Sequence record: OZ240615.1
Length of the DNA stretch: 64,000 bases
Strand: one strand, 5' to 3'
Shown here: one piece after another, positions 10,741-64,000 of the stretch
How positions within the stretch are numbered: the stretch's first letter is position 1
How the letters are laid out: the number at the start of each line of letters is the position of its first letter
Translations under genes and position numbers: made by a program
The notes under the pieces: model-generated
What the model saw: only the letters and a program-made list of their open reading frames with translations
Told to the model about the DNA's origin: nothing
The model's database searches: none

Positions 10741-10851
10741 CCTACACCTTATTTGTTAATTGGGAACGGAATACTTCTTACCGCACGTTTGACCTTTCTC
10801 AAGGGTCAACTTGGATCTTTCTCAAGGATCCATTAATACTCTCTCAATAAG

Positions 10852-10859
10852 GTAATATA
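10852..10859 (-). promoter_or_regulatory. Putative early (virion RNAP) promoter motif TATATTAC
   Basis: Exact match to the phiKZ early consensus TATATTAC, about 110 nt upstream of the operon containing the nvRNAP subunit, which is an expected early gene. Confidence 0.55.
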
Positions 10860-10886
10860 GGTTTCAAGAAAATTCGATATGGCAAA

Positions 10887-10921
10887 CATAGACCCAGTCC
10901 CTCGCAATGCGAGGGACTGGG
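10887..10921 (-). terminator. Terminator hairpin of the major capsid gene
   Basis: 13-bp inverted repeat CCCAGTCCCTCGC/GCGAGGGACTGGG at 10893-10921, followed by TATG on the minus strand. Confidence 0.8.
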
Positions 10922-10954
10922 CTAAGGCTTATTTAACTAAGCAATGACGCTAAC

Positions 10955-13240
10955 TTAAGACGCCGGGGTAACCTGGGTCTCGTTAACATCCAGCGCGGTG
11001 CGCTGCGCGATCGCTTCTTCCAGGTTGATCACGTTGATGACCAGCATGATCGGCAGGAAGTTGAAGTAACGGTAACGCGGGGTCAGGCGGATTTCACGGC
11101 CGATACGTTGGTTACGGATCATGTTGAAATCAACCAGGTACTCAGGGATGAAGCCCAGAACACCGTGCTGCAGCGGATGCGGCTCAGACTCGTTCGGCAG
11201 GATGAAGGTCATGACGATTTTGTCTTTCATACGCAGATCGGAGATACGCGCGATGGTGTAATCGTAACCGATACCCACGGTGCGGTCATCGCCATTGATC
11301 TGGATGTACTGCGGCAGACGCATGTCAGTACCGATCGCTACGTGCGGCTTCGGAGAACGGCCAGAGAAGGCAGCTTCCAGAGCAGCGGTGTAACCGGTCA
11401 GCTGATCAGCGGTGTAAACCATTTCGTTGATTTTGGAAACGATCAGGCCCTGGATATCGGTCTGCTTAGCAGCCGAGGTCAGGTTGTTCAGATCGTTCAG
11501 CACGTCAATGGTCGCTTCGTTGTAGTACGGACGAACGTAGTACTGGCCAACGCCTTCCAGACCGAGGTTAGATTCGATCGGATGCGGTACACCAACGCCC
11601 AGGTAGGACTTCAGGGTGTCGGCGCGGTTCAGCAGGGTGGTCACGGCGTTGTTACGCATCTGAATGCGGTACGCAGTGGTCAGTGCTTCCAGGCGCGGAT
11701 AGGTTTTGTCGTCTTCAACCATGGCCGGTTTAACGATGACCAGCGGCGGCAGAGTCGGGATCATGAAGCCCTGTTTCTGTACGTCGGAGTCGATCAGCAG
11801 GCCCATTTCCAGCTGGTTGATGTTGGTCAGACGCGCTTCCAGGCTATAACCTACGCCGGTTACGGTCAGGCCGCTCAGTGCCGCAGAAACGCGAGAATCG
11901 GTCAGGGCGATTTCTTTGCCTTCTTTATCGAAGACACGCGCCAGACGCAGGGCACGCAGAGAGGTGTCGCCGTTACCGTTTTCGACGTTCATTTCGCCGT
12001 CAACTTTCACGTCCAGCTCGATGCGGTAGCCCAGATCAAACAGATCTTTCAGCAGTGCAGATTCCGCGCCAGCCACGGTGGTGCTTTCTTCGCCCAGGCC
12101 CAGGGAGGTGTGGAACTTCAGCTGCATCAGACGGAAGTTGTATTCACGGGTCGCCGTGTACGCAGCGTACTGGTCGCGGTTTACGTCCAGTGCGAACAGT
12201 TCAGTGGTACCGCCTTTGGTGACCGAGATCAGAAGCTGTTTCAGCGCAATACGGCTGTCCAGGGAGTCGGTAAAGGTCATGGAACCTTTTTTCAGACGGG
12301 ACGGAGTTTGCGCCAGCATCAGCAGGTTGAAGCCTTCGCCGTTTTCGCTGAATTTCAGGAAGTTGGTGTCGAAGGTATCTTTACCTTGTTTCACGGTCTG
12401 CGCAGGCAGGACGGACGGATCGATGAACTGTTCGTCGTTTTCGCCGGACTGGATAACCGGGATCAGCTCGGTGCTGTTGGTTTCCAGAGTGGTGTAATCC
12501 AGCAGACCTTGCAGGATGTTACGTTTGGAGATCTCTTGTTTCTCGCCGCTCAGACCTTCGCCGGTCCAGCCTTCCCATACCAGGTTACGACGGATAGAGA
12601 GCTGGAAGCCAGCCTGGTCCGGGGTAACGATATAGGTGCGATAGAACAGTTCAGCGAACTCGTGCTGTTTTGCCACGATCATGTTGATCGCGTAGGAATG
12701 TTCGCGCCATTTTTCGGTTTCTTTCTCATCGAAAGATTCCAGAGACGGCAGGGATTTTGCCGGCAGAGTCGCGATGGAACCGTTAGCGCCTGCGGAAACG
12801 AATTCGTTCACGCGAACGTCGCTTTCGAAAGACGGAACGGCGTAGCCGTCACGGTAATACGCACGCGGGCTGTTGTGGGACATCGCCAGAATAGCAGCAG
12901 CTTCCACTGCAACTTCTTTCTGGTGTTGGCGCAGATCATCACCGCCGTCAACGAAACCTTCGCCTTCGCCATCAACCGCGTCGGTAGCTTCGGTGATCGC
13001 AGAGATCTGCTCAACCGCGTCGTTCAGGGAATCCTTCACTGCTTCCAGGGTGTTTTCAATGTCGTCAGCCTGAACGCCCAGCGCGTCGTAGCTTTCCAGA
13101 GCTACGGACATGACACCGGCAGCCTGACCCTGTGGCAGCATTGTGTGGTTCTTTTCAACGGACTGGCGAACGCTGTCGACCAGTGATTTAATTGCGCCAG
13201 CAGCGCCGGCGTTAAGAAGACCTTTTTTAGGACGTGCCAT
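10955..13240 (-). CDS. Major capsid protein (phiKZ gp120-like)
   Basis: 761 aa; strongly optimised codon usage; N-terminal propeptide with ALE/SFE/SLE cleavage motifs; C-terminal TPRYRYFNFLPIM segment; position next to the DnaB-like gene. Confidence 0.9.
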   Translation of the reverse strand: MARPKKGLLNAGAAGAIKSLVDSVRQSVEKNHTMLPQGQAAGVMSVALESYDALGVQADDIENTLEAVKDSLNDAVEQISAITEATDAVDGEGEGFVDGGDDLRQHQKEVAVEAAAILAMSHNSPRAYYRDGYAVPSFESDVRVNEFVSAGANGSIATLPAKSLPSLESFDEKETEKWREHSYAINMIVAKQHEFAELFYRTYIVTPDQAGFQLSIRRNLVWEGWTGEGLSGEKQEISKRNILQGLLDYTTLETNSTELIPVIQSGENDEQFIDPSVLPAQTVKQGKDTFDTNFLKFSENGEGFNLLMLAQTPSRLKKGSMTFTDSLDSRIALKQLLISVTKGGTTELFALDVNRDQYAAYTATREYNFRLMQLKFHTSLGLGEESTTVAGAESALLKDLFDLGYRIELDVKVDGEMNVENGNGDTSLRALRLARVFDKEGKEIALTDSRVSAALSGLTVTGVGYSLEARLTNINQLEMGLLIDSDVQKQGFMIPTLPPLVIVKPAMVEDDKTYPRLEALTTAYRIQMRNNAVTTLLNRADTLKSYLGVGVPHPIESNLGLEGVGQYYVRPYYNEATIDVLNDLNNLTSAAKQTDIQGLIVSKINEMVYTADQLTGYTAALEAAFSGRSPKPHVAIGTDMRLPQYIQINGDDRTVGIGYDYTIARISDLRMKDKIVMTFILPNESEPHPLQHGVLGFIPEYLVDFNMIRNQRIGREIRLTPRYRYFNFLPIMLVINVINLEEAIAQRTALDVNETQVTPAS

Positions 13241-54603: not shown

Positions 54604-54612
54604 TTGAAAATG

Positions 54613-54687
54613 CGACTCCTCCAGGACTTGAACCTGGGACCTACGGTTTAACAGACCGCCGCTACTAACCAACTGAGCTAAGGAGTC
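54613..54687 (-). tRNA. trnN: tRNA-Asn(GTT), CCA not encoded
   Basis: Cloverleaf; GCGGT-CT GTT AA-ACCGT; discriminator G. Confidence 0.9.
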
Positions 54688-54693
54688 ATTATT

Positions 54694-54795
54694 TGGTTGT
54701 TCCCGACCGGGTATGATCCGGTAACCTCCTGCTAAGCAGTGGGCGGCACAGTGGCCGCCGATGCAGGCGCTCTACCTAGTTGAGCTACGAGAACA
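54694..54795 (-). ncRNA. tRNA-like RNA with 30-nt hairpin-containing anticodon loop and 8-bp acceptor stem
   Basis: TGTTCTCG/CGGGAACA plus A-CCA, D arm GCTC/GAGC, stem CCTGC/GCAGG, T arm ACCGG-ATCATAC-CCGGT; 102 nt. Confidence 0.8.
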
Positions 54796-54802
54796 TTGTA
54801 TC

Positions 54803-54878
54803 TGGAGCAAGCAGCGAGGTTCGAACTCGCGACCTATGACTTGGAAGGACATCGCTCTACCAACTGAGCTATGCTTGC
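54803..54878 (-). tRNA. trnG: tRNA-Gly(TCC)
   Basis: Cloverleaf, U73, CCA; one T.T mismatch in the anticodon stem. Confidence 0.9.
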
Positions 54879-54887
54879 TTTATTGAG

Positions 54888-54959
54888 CAGAAGCACCTAG
54901 ATTCGAACTAGGGGTACGGAGATCAAAGCCCCGGGCCTTAACCGCTTGGCTATGCTTCT
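54888..54959 (-). tRNA. trnQ: tRNA-Gln(TTG), CCA not encoded
   Basis: Cloverleaf; CGGGG-CT TTG AT-CTCCG; G73. Confidence 0.88.
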
Positions 54960-54966
54960 ATGCGTT

Positions 54967-55050
54967 TGGTGGGGAAGGGTAGATTCGAACTACCGAAGCC
55001 GAAGCAGCAGATTTACAGTCTGACCCATTTGACCACTCTGGAACTTCCCC
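54967..55050 (-). tRNA. trnY: tRNA-Tyr(GTA)
   Basis: Cloverleaf with long variable arm, CT GTA AA loop, A-CCA. Confidence 0.92.
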
Positions 55051-55233
55051 TGAATTTGGGGCCCGATTATTTCAGCGCTGCATTCTTTACTCTCGGGCCA
55101 AGGAGCACTATTAGTTTCTTCTCAGGGCGTATTGTTTTCCCTCTGAGACTTGCGCAATGTTTGAACATGTTGATTGTTGTCTTAACATTCCGGAGAGAAA
55201 GTTACAATCTTTGTTCACAAGATATTGATTTAC

Positions 55234-55593
55234 TTAATTTTTGATCTGCGCATCAGGATTCCCATTAACCGACAGCCAAATATCGGCAACTAAAAGAATC
55301 TGTCCGCCATACTGATTGACCTGCTGCCACCCATTCTTTTTAGCGGCAACTGTAATCATTGATAAAAATTGATTTTTCCAATGACTTTGATAAATCTGGG
55401 AATGATGAATTATTCGGCGGTTTTCAAACTTCTCGATAGTCTCAAATTCTTTCGTCGCGCTGATCATAGCAAAAACATCTTTAGACTTGATCAAATAAGC
55501 AGGGTCATTAATAGACCGATCGGAAGCTAAAGGAAGACGAGAAGAAATATGGTCAACGTCTTCTTGATTGTGTGCAAACGTTACGTCGTTCAT
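55234..55593 (-). CDS. Hypothetical protein within the tRNA cluster
   Basis: 119 aa, AAAGG RBS. Confidence 0.65.
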   Translation of the reverse strand: MNDVTFAHNQEDVDHISSRLPLASDRSINDPAYLIKSKDVFAMISATKEFETIEKFENRRIIHHSQIYQSHWKNQFLSMITVAAKKNGWQQVNQYGGQILLVADIWLSVNGNPDAQIKN

Positions 55594-55675
55594 TTTTACT
55601 TTTACCTTTTACAAGTTAGCGGTCTAAACCAAAATAGGAAGACCAACAAAAACTGTGGGATGAATAATAATGAAG

Positions 55676-55749
<74 letters not shown>

Positions 55750-55754
55750 GTAGA

Positions 55755-55839
55755 TGGTGCCCAGGGCGGGGCTCGAACCCGCACGCGATAAAGCGAGGGA
55801 TTTTAAATCCCTTGTGTCTGCCGATTTCACCACCTGGGC
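55755..55839 (-). tRNA. trnL: tRNA-Leu(TAA)
   Basis: Cloverleaf with long variable arm; AGGGA-TT TAA AA-TCCCT; A-CCA. Confidence 0.93.
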
Positions 55840-55844
55840 AAATA

Positions 55845-55884
55845 TGGTGGGTCCAGCAGGTTTTGAACCTGCGACCTATAGCTT
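55845..55884 (-). pseudogene. Orphan tRNA 3' half (starts at the anticodon loop)
   Basis: AA-GCTAT-AGGTC-GCAGG TTCAAAA CCTGC-TGGACCC-A-CCA; no matching 5' half found nearby. Confidence 0.75.
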
Positions 55885-56337
55885 AGGTTTTATGTTTCCT
55901 TTTTGGCAACCTTTACGGTATTCTTCTAAATTAAAAACACCATTTACTGAGTATTTTACAATAGTAGCAAAAGGCAGTCCGGTAAAAAGAGATGCATCCC
56001 GAATACTATCATAAACCCACCCATCGATGGTCCATGTCATTCTTAATTTATCTGACCCATCACGGTGTGCATCTTTACTATCGTAATAATTATTGAGGTG
56101 AGTCCCTTTTTCGACGTGGTCGGGATTACAACACCTACGATTGTTGCATTTATGTCTAACGAGCATATCTTCTGGAATTTCCCCTTTAGACATTGCATAG
56201 GCTAGTCTATGGACATTCCATTTTACTTTATTAATATTTATCTGCCCGTAACCTTGACTTGTAGATTTTGTCCAGTTCCAACAACCCGTTTCTTTATCGA
56301 TATCAATTTTGTCTTTTACAATATCGTAAAAGTTCAT
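55876..56337 (-). CDS. Free-standing HNH homing endonuclease
   Basis: CWNW...HRLAY...VRHKCNNRRCCNPDHVEKGTHLNN (HNH) plus C-terminal NUMOD1-like DNA-binding segment (YDSIRDASLFTGL). Confidence 0.88.
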   Translation of the reverse strand: MNFYDIVKDKIDIDKETGCWNWTKSTSQGYGQININKVKWNVHRLAYAMSKGEIPEDMLVRHKCNNRRCCNPDHVEKGTHLNNYYDSKDAHRDGSDKLRMTWTIDGWVYDSIRDASLFTGLPFATIVKYSVNGVFNLEEYRKGCQKGNIKPKL

Positions 56338-56359
56338 AAAGTGATTCTCTTAATGATAA

Positions 56360-56435
56360 TGGTGGCCCTGGCGGGATTCAAACCCGCGACCAAGCGATTA
56401 TGAGTCGCCTGCGCTAATCACTGCGCCACAGGGCC
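56360..56435 (-). tRNA. trnI: tRNA-Ile2(CAT, lysidine type)
   Basis: Cloverleaf closely resembling enterobacterial ileX (GGCCC...GGCGA-CT CAT AA-TCGCT...GGGCC-A-CCA). Confidence 0.85.
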
Positions 56436-56655: not shown

Positions 56656-57513
56656 TTATTTCCCTGACGCTGTACCCTGAATACGCGCAGAGTTCTTCAG
56701 AAGAATTGTAGAGGCGTCTTCCAGTAACTGATCGCTATCGCCGGAGGTGTTTGCTACCACCAGGGTTTTAGTGCAAGGTACTTTTACTGTCGAGTTAAAG
56801 ATAATACCCGAGTCAGTAGTTGCCTTTTCGATCGTGTATACCGCTTTACCGTTTGGCAGTTTTGCATCGGCGTTCCAGGAATTGAAATCAATGATTTCCA
56901 GTCCGGAGTCTTTTTGCATAACAGCATCAAGGAACTTATTGTTTCGATCAGGCGCTGAGACCCAGAGGAATGCATCGTACTCGCCGGTATTCACTTTAGC
57001 CAAGGACCGGATACCGCCCTTAGCGTAGGTTTCAACTTTCGCGTAGTTCTTTTCCAGAGTTTGGAGATACTGCCATGAGGCATAAGATCCGGAGGTGGGT
57101 TCGCCAACCGCTATCTTGGTCCCTTCCTTCAGGTCACCTTTGCTTGTGACCTTACCGTCTTTCTTGACGGCAACGAAAACGCACTCGGAAGCCAGTTCGC
57201 CGATGATGTCAACGTTCTGTGCTTCATTAGCATGGCGTGAACGCCAGAACTGATACGCGTCAGCTTGAGTAAAACCGATAGTTGCTTCACCGGCGGCGAC
57301 ACGATCCAGATTATCGAGTGATCCTTTAGAAGGGAGCACAGTGGTCTGATAGCCGTATTCGCCGAGAGCGCTGGCTAAGTTAACACCGTATGTGGCGTTA
57401 TACGTCAGACCTTGTTGACCGGTCGTGATAACAACTTTGTCAGGTGCCGCAGAGGCACCAACGGAAAGGCAAAGCAACGCTACCGAAAACACGGCAAAAG
57501 CAAGTTTCTTCAT
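56656..57513 (-). CDS. TAXI-family TRAP solute-binding (periplasmic) protein
   Basis: Signal peptide; ITTGQQGLTY, SKGSLDNLDRV...IGFTQAD and IAVGEPTSGS motifs typical of TAXI receptors. Confidence 0.8.
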   Translation of the reverse strand: MKKLAFAVFSVALLCLSVGASAAPDKVVITTGQQGLTYNATYGVNLASALGEYGYQTTVLPSKGSLDNLDRVAAGEATIGFTQADAYQFWRSRHANEAQNVDIIGELASECVFVAVKKDGKVTSKGDLKEGTKIAVGEPTSGSYASWQYLQTLEKNYAKVETYAKGGIRSLAKVNTGEYDAFLWVSAPDRNNKFLDAVMQKDSGLEIIDFNSWNADAKLPNGKAVYTIEKATTDSGIIFNSTVKVPCTKTLVVANTSGDSDQLLEDASTILLKNSARIQGTASGK

Positions 57514-59094: not shown

Positions 59095-59145
59095 ATTGCC
59101 CTCGTTTTACAGTCTTCTACACTAAAAGACTGTACCGTAAAAAAG

Positions 59146-59179
59146 CATAATAGAGAGAAGGGTTTAAACCCTTCTCTCT
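59146..59179 (-). terminator. Terminator after the permuted tRNA-like RNAs
   Basis: AGAGAGAAGGGTT/AACCCTTCTCTCT at 59152-59179; TATG at 59149-59146. Confidence 0.75.
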
Positions 59180-59231
59180 CGAGTTTGTTTGTCAAAAAGC
59201 GGTCTCTTTGAGAAAGAAACTTTTAGGGAAG

Positions 59232-59460
59232 AAGGGCGACGGATAAGGATATAACCATCCTCACCGCCACCCATAGCCATTCAGCTATAAACAGAATCCA
59301 GCGCGACCTATTTCACAATAAGATTGGGTTTAGGTTTATAATCTAGTGCTCTACCAGCTGAGCTATCTGCCTCCAAGAAACACTCTGTGAATGTGTCCAG
59401 GTAGGCAGAGCGGAATTCGAATCCGCGACCTCTAGAATTCTTTCCGTAAAAGAAAGAAAG
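59232..59460 (-). ncRNA. Circularly permuted tRNA-like RNA 2 (Y-RNA/YrlA-like topology)
   Basis: 3' half 59436-59402 precedes 5' half 59372-59342; acceptor AGGCAGA/TCTGCCT, anticodon-type stem CTAGA/TCTAG, perfect D and T arms; 29-nt linker. Confidence 0.8.
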
Positions 59461-59461
59461 T

Positions 59462-59691
59462 TCAGTCCGCTATTTTACTGTCTACTCTTTATCTTTAAGC
59501 GTGTGAGGCGATAAGATAAAGTTAACACTAACCATCCGAGTAGCATTATGGGTGCATTGATGACTGCGTCTACCAATTCCGCCATTCTCCCATAGTTTGG
59601 TGGGAGAAGAAAGATTCGAACTTCCAGTGAGGTCATCACACCTGCTATACGGACTAACAATAAAGATAAAGTTGGCCTCAATCTTTATTAT
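59462..59691 (-). ncRNA. Circularly permuted tRNA-like RNA 1 (Leu-type D arm; Y-RNA/YrlA-like topology)
   Basis: 3' half 59636-59598 (ends A-CCA) precedes 5' half 59591-59560; acceptor GGGAGAA/TTCTCCC; stem GTCATCA/TGATGAC; 6-nt linker. Confidence 0.85.
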
Positions 59692-59727
59692 CAATGGGCA
59701 CTCGTGAGAATACCCATTACTAACACA

Positions 59728-60495
59728 TTAAGCAGTGAAGTTTTTCAGGATCACGTTGGCCAGTACTTCGCCGATGGAACCCTGAACGACTTCGGTGCAG
59801 TTTGCGCGCATACGGGCATTAGTGACTTCAACGATCAGTTCGTCGATATCACGCAGCGCGTTGGCTTTCTGCATCGGTGTACACGCGCCAGAATAACTTT
59901 TACGCGTGAAGCTGCCGATCACCACGGTCGTTTCTGACTCTTTTACTTGCGCCGGATGACGCTCGGTAGCCGGGGCCAGAATGATCGGGGTGAAGACTTT
60001 TTCGGTTTTCGTTGTGACTTCATCGGTCACAGTACGGAAGCCGTAAGTACTGTTAGCGTCGCGTTCCCACTGTTTGGAGGAATCCAGCGTAGGAGCAGAC
60101 GCGATCAGTTTGCGCAGTTCGGCCAGACGTTTCTCCAGACCGAGGAGTTCATCTACCGGCACCGCTGGAACGAGGACTTCGCCTTTGAACATGATATCTG
60201 CTTTCGCTACCTGATTGGTCAGGGCTTTTTGCAGGCGCAGGTCTTCCGCGGTGGCGAAGTAATAGAACAGGTACTGCAGCGTTTCGGCGACGGTAGTGAT
60301 CACCGGCTTGCTGGTACTTTCGCTTTTTTCGATCGCTGCGTTGGCGTCGCTATCTTCGTGCAGTTTCAGCGTTTTATCAAATCCGCTGAAGTATTCAGCC
60401 GATTTATTGAATTTTTTACTGGCGTCTTCGATCAGCACTTGCACTTGTTTAGTGCGAGTAGGTTCTGCTGCCAATACTTCGTGTAACTTAGCCAT
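59728..60495 (-). CDS. Conserved-type helical/coiled-coil protein of unknown function (MAKLHEVLAAE...)
   Basis: 255 aa, AAGGA RBS, capsid-like optimised codon usage; ends 36 nt before the permuted RNA 1 leader. Confidence 0.85.
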   Translation of the reverse strand: MAKLHEVLAAEPTRTKQVQVLIEDASKKFNKSAEYFSGFDKTLKLHEDSDANAAIEKSESTSKPVITTVAETLQYLFYYFATAEDLRLQKALTNQVAKADIMFKGEVLVPAVPVDELLGLEKRLAELRKLIASAPTLDSSKQWERDANSTYGFRTVTDEVTTKTEKVFTPIILAPATERHPAQVKESETTVVIGSFTRKSYSGACTPMQKANALRDIDELIVEVTNARMRANCTEVVQGSIGEVLANVILKNFTA

Positions 60496-60600
60496 TTAAT
60501 TTCCTTACGATAAGAGTGAGAATAACGTCTGTTCATAGACTAGTTATCACCGTAAAAAAATAAAAAAAAAGAAAGGGGATAATACCCCTTTCTACGTTAC

Positions 60601-62089: not shown

Positions 62090-63259
62090 TTAAAGAAAAC
62101 TGGTTTTGGTCAATTTTGCCATTTCAACGGTATTTTCCCAGTTGAGTGCTTCCGCCAAAGTAACGTCCTTACGACCGTTAAAATCTACAGGTGGGTAATT
62201 TACAGCAGCGCGTGCACGGTTGGCTTCTTCTGGGGACAGTGATCTGAATGGCAACGCTTTAAATAATCGTCCGGGACGAATAATCGCATCGTCTACGCCT
62301 TTAAGGTTTAGAATATTAGTCGAGATAATAAATTTGACGTTACCAGAAGTAATCCCTTCTACTGCGTTCAATAACCCAGACATCAGGCTATTACCACTTT
62401 CACGTCGTTCAAGCATAACTTGTTGGTCTTCGGTAATAAACCACGAACCATCATCGAGATCATGAAGGTAGGGAATAAGACCGGGAGAAGTCAGAACATC
62501 GGTCGTGTCTGCGACGACGATGTTGTCTTGCTTTTGTTGGTTTTTCCAACGTATCATTTCTCGAATGAACTGGCTCTTACCCAAACCAGGCGCACCATAT
62601 AACACCAATACATTGTTATTGGATTTATCAAACGCCTCCGCTAATTCCGCCGGGGAAGTTGAGAAATAAGGCCAAAAGCCGATATAATCACTTATCGTTC
62701 TTTTTGACTCTAGGCGTTTATTACGGCCTATCACCGCTTTATTAACATTTAACGAAAGACGCCCTACGGTTTCCGGGAGAGGGGCAGTAAAGAAAGCAGA
62801 GACAATGTCGACAAACCCCTGGCATATCTCCTCAGGGCCATAACAGTTTACAAAGTTTTCTGAAATACCCGATCCGAAATAAAGCATTCCGATAATTTTA
62901 CCACGATTATTCGCAAGGAGAAAACTCCCTGGTATAATTTCGGTGTGCGTGAAAACATTAAACTCCTTCAAGTAATCTTTTAACGGACCGCCAATAAGAC
63001 TATCTACTGCGCAATTTAATTCGCGTTGATTACCAACCAGCCAAAACCCTTTTCGCGAGAATGCCATCGGGCGGTTATTGACGCCTAAGAAAAGACGTAT
63101 TGCCTTTTTAACAGCTTCATTGGAGTTACGTACATCAGCAGAAATACGACAAAATATATCGAAGAATTCCATCATCTCTTCTTTGAGTTTACCGCTATCT
63201 GCATGAGAGTTAGAGGAAAGACTTTTGGTGAAGATGTCGTTTTTACTTTCATTGGCCAT
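62090..63259 (-). CDS. AAA+ ATPase
   Basis: Walker A GAPGLGKS, variant Walker B WFITED, LLNAVEG, IISTN sensor-1, DDAIIRPGR SRH. Confidence 0.88.
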   Translation of the reverse strand: MANESKNDIFTKSLSSNSHADSGKLKEEMMEFFDIFCRISADVRNSNEAVKKAIRLFLGVNNRPMAFSRKGFWLVGNQRELNCAVDSLIGGPLKDYLKEFNVFTHTEIIPGSFLLANNRGKIIGMLYFGSGISENFVNCYGPEEICQGFVDIVSAFFTAPLPETVGRLSLNVNKAVIGRNKRLESKRTISDYIGFWPYFSTSPAELAEAFDKSNNNVLVLYGAPGLGKSQFIREMIRWKNQQKQDNIVVADTTDVLTSPGLIPYLHDLDDGSWFITEDQQVMLERRESGNSLMSGLLNAVEGITSGNVKFIISTNILNLKGVDDAIIRPGRLFKALPFRSLSPEEANRARAAVNYPPVDFNGRKDVTLAEALNWENTVEMAKLTKTSFL

Positions 63260-63792: not shown

Positions 63793-64000
63793 TTAGCGGC
63801 TGATGAAACCGCCTTGTTTGATTTCGCTCTGCAGCGCTTGATACGCCTCCCAGTTTAGCGCTTCTGCTAGGCTGAGTTTGGGCACGCTACCGAAATCAAT
63901 CGGGGGATGACCGACTGCGGCACGCGCGGCATTCGCTTGGTCAGGCGTTAACGATTTAAACGGAATGACGCGTAACGTGCGACCAGGGCGGTACAATGCG
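63793..64000 (-). CDS. C-terminus of a second AAA+ ATPase paralog (runs off right edge)
   Basis: ALYRPGR...PFKSLTPDQANAARAAVGHPPIDF...LAEALNWE aligns with the C-terminus of 62090-63259. Confidence 0.85.
   Translation of the reverse strand, partial: ALYRPGRTLRVIPFKSLTPDQANAARAAVGHPPIDFGSVPKLSLAEALNWEAYQALQSEIKQGGFISR

Follow-up and report, generated by a model that had tools for sequence, protein, structure and literature searches.

DUF7873 proteins and tandem permuted tRNA mimics form a conserved unit in phages and bacteria

The stretch of DNA analysed here, 64,000 nucleotides of sequence record OZ240615.1 (hereafter the 64-kb window), matches Klebsiella phage vB_KpM_Centimanus at 100% identity and vB_KpM_FBKp24 at 99.5%; the genomes of these two jumbo phages are roughly 300 kb long. 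On its minus strand it encodes a 255-aa protein of the Pfam family DUF7873 (open reading frame (ORF) at 59728–60495), followed by two transfer RNA (tRNA)-like RNAs, RNA 1 (59535–59653) and RNA 2 (59287–59485), whose parts stand in circularly permuted order. We find that this unit is the phage copy of a widespread, apparently undescribed two-part module that consists of a DUF7873 protein and tandem permuted tRNA mimics, its gene and its RNAs being co-inherited in phages as well as bacteria. The RNAs add a new branch to the YrlA-like permuted tRNA mimics, and the protein is new: in the literature we found no paper naming DUF7873, and none of the work we found on YrlA, on Y RNAs or on permuted tRNAs of phages describes the linkage between gene and RNAs. 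To our knowledge, the bacterial Y RNAs, which are defined by their partner Ro60, are the only family of circularly permuted tRNA mimics described so far. That the unit is a functional, Ro60-independent gene-RNA module we consider highly probable; for the overall picture of a new Ro60-independent protein-RNA module related to the YrlA Y RNAs, including its processing, its protein-RNA binding and a role in the tRNA machinery, we put the probability at about 0.6.

The linkage was examined in 162 homolog loci, drawn from 80 bacterial genomes (out of at least 562 matching species), 80 viral contigs (out of 345) and 2 GenBank phage records. We searched these loci with a permuted-tRNA scanner that demands a 5-bp T stem with a T-loop motif, seven of seven acceptor pairs over a linker of 3–90 nt, a GG-containing D arm and four of five pairs in the equivalent of the anticodon stem. 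The scanner returned 211 matches, 209 of which lie on the strand of the gene and 184 within 400 nt downstream. At least one strict-scan match was present in 143 loci; a relaxed scan added five loci and a covariance model four, so that 152 of the 162 carry permuted RNAs directly downstream of the gene and on its strand, and homologs in general have the adjacent RNAs rather than lack them. Among the ten loci with no RNA match, four have too short a downstream sequence, and the rest include Herpetosiphon, to which we return below. The reverse search started from a 17-base motif of the bacterial RNA A and retrieved 120 metagenome stretches, from which chance matches in coding sequences were removed by eye; of the approximately 50 genuine RNAs, 47 lie about 175 nt downstream of a DUF7873 gene, and three lack such a gene. 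Linkage is thus strongly supported in both directions, and the initial annotation, which had joined the gene and two permuted tRNA-like RNAs into one candidate system, described a conserved unit.

Within the window the scanner reports exactly two sites, RNA 1 and RNA 2, and on a reversed control of 1.85 Mb, both strands, it reports six matches. RNA 1, a type A mimic recovered by scanner, fold and covariance model alike, reads on the minus strand from a T arm GGAAG-UUCGAAU-CUUUC (59609–59625) into the acceptor 3' strand UUCUCCC with ACCA (59598–59608) and, after a 6-nt loop, into the acceptor 5' strand GGGAGAA (59585–59591), which gives seven perfect pairs. Behind a further UG stands a tRNA-Leu-type D arm, GCGGAAUUGGUAGACGC (59566–59582), which we take to match E. 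coli tRNA-Leu over 18 nt. RNA 2, a type B mimic found by the same three approaches, follows the same plan on the same strand, with a T arm GCGGA-UUCGAAU-UCCGC (59410–59426), an acceptor 3' strand UCUGCCU with ACC (59400–59409), a linker hairpin of 27 nt (59373–59399), an acceptor 5' strand AGGCAGA that again forms seven perfect pairs (59366–59372), and a canonical D arm, GCUCAGCUGGUAGAGC (59348–59363). Its core spans 59342–59436, an extra hairpin lies at 59438–59458, and its outer limits (59287 and 59485) come from the minimum-free-energy fold and are uncertain; the fold z-score is −4.9. In the fold of RNA 1 the two ends pair as a terminal helix of approximately 22 nt per strand. The RNAs end where the anticodon loop of a tRNA would be, in a long helix, and the acceptor stem is closed by a linker.

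A covariance model trained on 29 non-Klebsiella type B RNAs placed RNA 2 as the top match of the window (35.4 bits, E 2e-10) and also recovered RNA 1 (25.6 bits, E 6e-7). Because the same model scores junctions in the real tRNA array at 54.5–56.4 kb, its matches alone are no proof; such tandem-tRNA junctions are a known artefact and a published caveat (PMC4201824). We rejected this artefact as the source of the two RNAs, as no full tRNA flanks either of them and the seven-of-seven acceptor complementarity lies inside each unit. We likewise rejected the remnant of an integration site in a tRNA gene: an integrase is absent, and the features covary across hundreds of loci.

Two types can be distinguished among the RNAs of the homolog loci. 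In type A the D stem has 3 bp, the D loop is Leu-like and 11 nt long, and the discriminator is A in 66 of 72. The D stem of type B has 4 bp and its D loop 7–8 nt, with U as the discriminator in 70 of 125 and G, A or C in the remainder. Type A precedes type B in 50 loci, and the reverse order is seen in one. The bacterial linkers measure 4–8 nt; those of phages contain a hairpin and are about 28 nt long. The acceptor stems vary freely in sequence while their pairing is constant; G1:C72 is common, and neither G3:U70 nor any other fixed identity pair is present in the acceptor stems of the RNAs compared. A C follows the discriminator in 78–98% of RNAs, and a full CCA is encoded in 79% of viral type B RNAs. 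This encoded CCA is under selection, which supports a functional 3' end.

Several features that the scanner does not demand are also conserved. U8 and A14 are each present in 178 of 181 RNAs, and the 15:48 pair is A-U or G-C in 175 of 181, covarying between the two; in tRNAs, U8, A14 and 15:48 make the contacts that keep the L-shape. As far as their sequences go, all the builders of that shape (T arm, D arm, 7-bp acceptor stem, U8, A14 and 15:48) are thus combined in each RNA. RNAalifold, run on 20 bacterial loci with no structure supplied, recovered the T, acceptor and D arms and the terminal helix of both RNAs, with compensatory changes in 42 of its 54 pairs; pair counts on the trimmed alignment, by comparison, are circular for pairing and show only the degree of sequence variation.

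The tRNA-like cores are flanked by clade-specific motifs that are enriched 20–100 fold. In the phage clade the motif is UAUCGU, enriched approximately 20-fold beside the RNAs of related phages, and the AACTTTATCTT that occurs twice in the window looks like a variant of it. Its only two exact copies in the window (59513–59523 and 59663–59673, minus strand) sit in the hairpins on either side of RNA 1. The bacterial flank motifs are AAGCUGA, CUCGCUCCAG and CUUAAACG: GGAGCGCAAGCUGA stands upstream of RNA A, CUCGCUCCAG..UCAGCAUU downstream of RNA A, and CUUAAACG downstream of RNA B. A candidate motif common to all clades, UAUYRYU, failed to hold, whereas the clade-specific motifs did.

We compared Centimanus with one relative whose DUF7873 gene is 88.7% identical. 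In the gene, 78 codons differ with only 13 amino-acid changes. RNA 1 is 95% identical between the two phages, the core of RNA 2 98%, and the first three hairpins of the unit 98–100% (98% for those before RNA 1, 59656–59718, and 100% for that between RNA 1 and RNA 2, 59487–59521); identity is 82% in the 3' flank of RNA 2, 79% in hairpins 4–6 and 68% in the terminator. Pairing is kept despite substitutions in the terminal helix of RNA 1, in the 59234–59272 hairpin, where they are many, and in the terminator.

The 255-aa product matches PF25283 end to end, residues 1–251 aligning to profile positions 1–243 of 244 (E 5.5e-72; 242.8 bits against a cutoff of 27). The family comprises at least 2,657 representatives at 50% identity, almost all 243–265 aa long, and no domain fusions occur among the best 150 of these. 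DUF7873 is present in at least 562 bacterial species, chiefly of the Actinomycetes, filamentous cyanobacteria, myxobacteria and Chloroflexi. Among sequenced phages, 75 encode it, and these include phages of Klebsiella, Ralstonia, Vibrio, Rhizobium and Gordonia. Its members are named "hypothetical" or "DUF7873 family protein" in their sources, and all GenBank phage records have "hypothetical protein". The fraction of E. coli-type optimal codons (Fop) in the phage gene is 0.71 against a median of 0.52, ranking second of the 49 window genes; only the phiKZ-type major capsid gene (10955–13240) exceeds it. The initial annotation's impression of a gene as optimised as the major capsid gene is broadly in line with these values. 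The phage protein accordingly appears to be highly expressed, judging by codon choice, and codon optimisation second only to the capsid gene suggests that its role may be stoichiometric rather than catalytic.

An AlphaFold2 model of the protein (predicted local distance difference test score 90.3, predicted template modelling score 0.62) combines four long helices with short strands and, at residues 159–198, a long beta-hairpin, so that the fold is mixed alpha/beta. The turn of this 16-residue beta-hairpin carries ATxxHPAQ, the most conserved motif of the family. By eye, the protein had been predicted to be largely helical or coiled-coil; the model has the long helices, but its fold as a whole is mixed. 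Foldseek searches of the PDB and BFVD with the model returned nothing at E 0.001 or better, the weak resemblances being to the ring-forming proteins FliF and TraT with probabilities below 0.3, and sequence and profile searches of the PDB gave no matches. No model in PHROGs, NCBIfam or PADLOC matches the protein. Of the architecture of Ro60/Rsr (a TROVE HEAT-repeat ring plus vWA) there is no sign in it, as the protein matches DUF7873 only.

Among known RNA families, the best non-tRNA match in Rfam is YrlA (RF02553), which scores 37.9 bits on RNA 2, against a gathering score of 69, and does not match RNA 1; in 11 related loci no family reached its Rfam cutoff. In a viral locus termed L092, YrlA scores 34.5 bits. 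YrlA RNAs are permuted tRNA mimics that are bound by Ro60/Rsr and encoded within 4 kb of Ro60, with a proposed Rsr-binding motif, GNCGAAN0-1G, near the 5' end (PMC4201824; bioRxiv 10.1101/312249). The RNAs described here share with the YrlA RNAs of Ro60/Rsr, as in the Rsr-Y RNA-PNPase machine of Salmonella and Deinococcus, the permuted order of T arm, closed acceptor stem and D arm, ends that meet in a long helix, and the frequent arrangement as two tandem RNAs on the same strand beside the presumed protein partner, in bacteria as well as phages. They differ in the linked protein, which is DUF7873 (approximately 250 aa, with an unrelated fold) rather than a 500-aa TROVE/vWA ring, and in their acceptor stems, which are exactly 7 bp long and followed by an encoded C, CC or CCA. 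Most YrlA acceptor stems have been judged poor RNase P substrates (bioRxiv 10.1101/312249). A 7-bp stem is known from one YrlA only, that of Mycobacterium smegmatis. In vivo, this RNA is an RNase P substrate and acquires a CCA end, which yields a two-piece tRNA-like RNA, and YrlB comes from the same precursor (PMC4201824). Our RNAs resemble it in the 7-bp acceptor stem and in the presence of a second RNA, although for RNase P and CCA they have only the sequence prerequisites. Unlike them, M. smegmatis YrlA is Rsr-bound and encoded just upstream of rsr (PMC4201824), and the sequence of its terminal helix, as taken from published primers, is unlike that of the DUF7873-linked RNAs.

These comparisons outline how the module might work. 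By analogy with M. smegmatis YrlA, RNase P would cut on the 5' side of the acceptor 5' strand and open the acceptor end. Trimming or extension of the 3' side would then yield CCA, and the tRNA-like RNA would be left in two pieces. The abundant DUF7873 protein would bind the part that is not tRNA-like, namely the terminal helices with their clade-specific motifs, and the resulting ribonucleoprotein would present its tRNA-like domains to the machinery that handles tRNAs. The tRNA-like domain of Y RNAs has itself been suggested as a docking site for an unknown factor. In phages, where the module resides in islands of tRNA genes, it may keep up or take over translation through the quality control of tRNA or other RNA; alternatively, it may serve as a buffer against attack on tRNA acceptor ends. 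The RNAs make up a second and larger lineage of mimics that are still closer to tRNA, coupled to a different protein with no known fold relative, and the module is a candidate Ro60-independent ribonucleoprotein open to testing. The RNAs form a clean covarying set suited to structural work, and the module gives an abundant jumbo-phage protein a function to look for.

A more specific version, in which the mimic is aminoacylated, strikes us as a long shot. Here RNA A, opened by RNase P and ending in CCA, would be charged by leucyl-tRNA synthetase, DUF7873 would take the place of the missing anticodon arm, as SmpB does for transfer-messenger RNA (tmRNA), and the charged RNA would be delivered to the ribosome or to an aminoacyl-transferase. 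The identity set of E. coli tRNA-Leu is independent of the anticodon and consists of A73, A15:U48 and the Leu-type D loop, and RNA A carries all three. The parallel with tmRNA and SmpB extends to a tRNA mimic that has no anticodon arm and a small dedicated protein, often encoded alongside, and in permuted ssrA genes too the T arm and CCA end precede the 5' acceptor strand. The differences are that the DUF7873-linked RNAs have no tag reading frame, no pseudoknots and no G3:U70, and that they do have a true D stem; ARAGORN finds nothing in its tmRNA mode, and the Rfam beta_tmRNA model scores 24.8 bits against a cutoff of 84. Were it true, phages and large-genome bacteria would share either a second system of the tmRNA kind or a dedicated amino-acid donor.

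Several observations weigh against the picture of a protein-RNA module that is made, processed and bound as one. In Herpetosiphon (L167–L169; 10001–10735) the DUF7873 gene is present genus-wide with no permuted RNA within 10 kb, and two metagenome loci, L200 (1433–1644, minus strand) and L274, hold a clear RNA A, accompanied in L200 by RNA B, with no adjacent DUF7873 gene; the genes directly upstream of the RNAs in these two loci encode a dehydrogenase-like protein and an ABC-F ATPase. Because protein-only and RNA-only loci exist, gene and RNAs are separable in genomes. The isoelectric point of the phage protein is about 6 and the median of the DUF7873 family 6.1, near-neutral values unlike those of most RNA-binding proteins, which argues against simple charge-driven RNA binding, and Foldseek searches with the model revealed no recognisable RNA-binding fold. 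The cut by RNase P and the CCA end are drawn by analogy only. Finally, the depositors of FBKp24 place a promoter between the gene and RNA 1, so co-transcription of the gene with the RNAs is uncertain. In Herpetosiphon, a gene for an ADP-ribosylglycohydrolase begins 93 nt downstream of DUF7873.

Could the RNAs simply be YrlA-type Y RNAs for a Ro60 (Rsr) encoded elsewhere, with DUF7873 an accessory or an unrelated neighbour? The Rfam ranking points that way, as does L092, a viral contig on which a true Ro60 (TROVE and vWA_Ro60 domains; 10747–12369, plus strand) lies 4 kb downstream of the module on the same strand, within the distance that defines YrlA (PMC4201824). Rfam finds no other Y-like RNA in this 12.8-kb locus, and there the DUF7873-linked RNAs might also serve Ro60. 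The YrlA scores, however, are half of the gathering score, and a sample of 100 neighbour families contains Ro60 only once. In a search that took in neither the remainder of the 300-kb phage genome nor that of the host, a TROVE domain is absent from all 20 window ORFs of at least 400 aa, so that the same-strand TROVE gene expected of YrlA within about 4 kb (PMC4201824) is not found among these ORFs; nor does precomputed Pfam annotation show one within 10 kb in four bacterial lineages. GNCGAAN0-1G occurs at background frequency, in 13 of 197 RNAs and 12 of 197 control segments. Ro60 thus stands outside the module, which is independent of it in both gene neighbourhood and motif, as the proposal of Y-like RNAs with a partner other than Ro60 had anticipated, and we regard a service to a distant Ro60 as rather improbable. 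The tRNA-like structures could instead act in cis, as RNase P signals or 3'-end stabilisers of the DUF7873 messenger RNA, with the protein unrelated to the mimicry; the mascRNA element of MALAT1 is a parallel for such a tRNA-like 3' element. This would fit the constant position of the RNAs downstream of the gene and on its strand and the lack of a T-run terminator between gene and RNAs in the window, as well as 7-bp acceptor stems that are good RNase P substrates and a protein that is not basic. A single processing site, however, needs neither two distinct RNA types in fixed order, each with its own conserved terminal helix and motifs, nor an encoded CCA that is under selection, nor tertiary-pair covariation of tRNA grade, and loci with the RNAs but no gene exist; a cis role is therefore unlikely.

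A part in biological conflict, whether as a toxin-antitoxin or abortive-infection pair or as a phage anti-defence decoy that soaks up tRNA-attacking enzymes, would account for the patchy distribution over large-genome bacteria and phages, for a phage protein that appears highly expressed, and for phage copies among tRNA genes, commonly interpreted as countermeasures against defences that target tRNA (PMC7824862). We nevertheless hold it to be unlikely: no PADLOC model matches the module, the bacterial copies occupy stable syntenic sites among housekeeping genes (proS in Nocardia, for example), and the RNAs follow the gene as two distinct RNAs, unlike the antitoxins of type III systems, which are tandem repeats upstream. 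The decoy against anticodon nucleases such as PrrC, RloC and PARIS that the initial annotation had put forward is unlikely because the RNAs have no anticodon loop, although they may be decoys for enzymes that attack the acceptor or CCA end. That the RNAs are real tRNAs, either a suppressor tRNA(UUA) or permuted precursors spliced into normal tRNAs, we consider very improbable. ARAGORN does call a tRNA-Stop(tta) at 59400–59483 (minus strand), GenBank lists a tRNA-Sup-TTA in FBKp24, a tRNA-TERM in LPKP23 and a tRNA-Stop in Centimanus, and some algae as well as one archaeon have permuted tRNA genes (cited in bioRxiv 10.1101/312249). Yet in the ARAGORN fold the acceptor stem has two mismatches and the D stem is mismatched too, the position that would be U33 is a C in the closest relative, and the Rfam tRNA model (RF00005) finds nothing at 59280–59700 even at E up to 1, whereas the permuted reading of the same T arm gives perfect acceptor and D stems that are conserved in other loci. 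The suppressor tRNA at 59400–59483 is probably a mis-annotation that reuses the T arm of RNA 2, and the permuted reading corrects this recurrent GenBank entry. The permuted tRNA genes of the red alga Cyanidioschyzon merolae likewise place the 3' half before the 5' half, and their acceptor stem is closed at first and then opened by RNase P and RNase Z. Their precursors are circularised into normal tRNAs with an anticodon loop, which is impossible here: the junction has no anticodon-loop sequence and no bulge-helix-bulge splice motif. We also know of no tRNA splicing endonuclease in bacteria.

The surroundings of the module vary. All-against-all clustering of 2,508 neighbouring ORFs revealed no second conserved neighbour gene; in bacteria the neighbours are housekeeping genes that differ between lineages and are syntenic within a genus. 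The general link to RNA-repair genes that the initial annotation had suggested proved rare, as an RNA ligase with a CCA-adding enzyme, RtcB and Ro60 are each found in one lineage. The RNA ligase and CCA-adding enzyme stand upstream of the DUF7873 gene in a single lineage (L163), and homologs of these two occur at none of the other loci. On a viral contig of 238 kb (L097; 7468–12311, plus strand) the module is followed by a gene for an Rv2179c-like 3'-5' exoribonuclease and by RtcB. tRNA genes, by comparison, lie within 6 kb in 55 of the 80 viral loci, and 219 of these 225 tRNAs share the strand of the module. The seven tRNAs of the window at 54.6–56.4 kb fit this setting of phage tRNA islands. 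Within the array (54612–56435, minus strand), Centimanus has, relative to FBKp24, an HNH endonuclease gene inserted between tRNA-Leu and tRNA-Met, and the tRNA sets differ, FBKp24 having Ser and Asp and Centimanus Gly. One Planotetraspora genome (L012:2379–2764) and one viral contig (L129:8505–8895) carry a tmRNA gene less than 3.5 kb from the module. Between the array and the unit, the window also encodes a secreted-looking periplasmic solute-binding protein of the NMT1_3/TAXI family (56656–57513, minus strand; PHROG 6856, E 9e-108), an unusual phage cargo whose gene has the third-highest codon optimisation among the smaller genes.

The unit is bracketed by two terminator-like hairpins on the minus strand. 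At its 5' boundary, a hairpin of 9 pairs followed by the T run TTTTTTTTTAT (60570–60593) marks the end of the upstream gene. The stop codon of the DUF7873 gene ends at 59728, and the leader hairpin of RNA 1 begins 36 nt later, at 59692, the spacing first given for it. Two hairpins fill the interval from the stop codon to RNA 1 (59656–59718), one at 59693–59718 and one at 59656–59692, of which the latter holds AACTTTATCTT; because neither has a T run, transcription past the end of the gene into the RNAs is plausible. The second copy of AACTTTATCTT belongs to the hairpin that fills the spacer between RNA 1 and RNA 2 (59487–59521). Behind RNA 2, three further hairpins (59274–59287, 59234–59272 and 59202–59220; together 59202–59287) lead to the hairpin at 59152–59179 that had been proposed to close the unit, and in which we count 12 pairs around a 4-nt loop, with a T-rich tail, ATTATGCTTTTTT. 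The whole 582 nt from stop codon to terminator have a fold z-score of −9.3 against shuffled sequence.

Just past each of the bracketing terminators lies one of the exactly two exact copies of TTTTTACGGT in the window (59134–59143 and 60549–60558, minus strand), which could be a local promoter element or a duplication. Neither AACTTTATCTT nor TTTTTACGGT qualifies as a general phage promoter, each having only two copies in the window, both at the unit. FBKp24 carries an annotated 38-aa gene, vBKpMFBKp24_047, over 59164–59280 of the window (minus strand). The stretch consists of hairpins and is probably non-coding, because the hairpin pairing survives substitutions and indels in a related phage. 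Upstream of the unit the window holds two related genes for AAA-type ATPases (PHROG 14322; 62090–63259 and 63793–63996, minus strand), and approximately 5.5 kb further upstream, outside the window, the FBKp24 annotation lists a "putative tRNA nuclease WapA".

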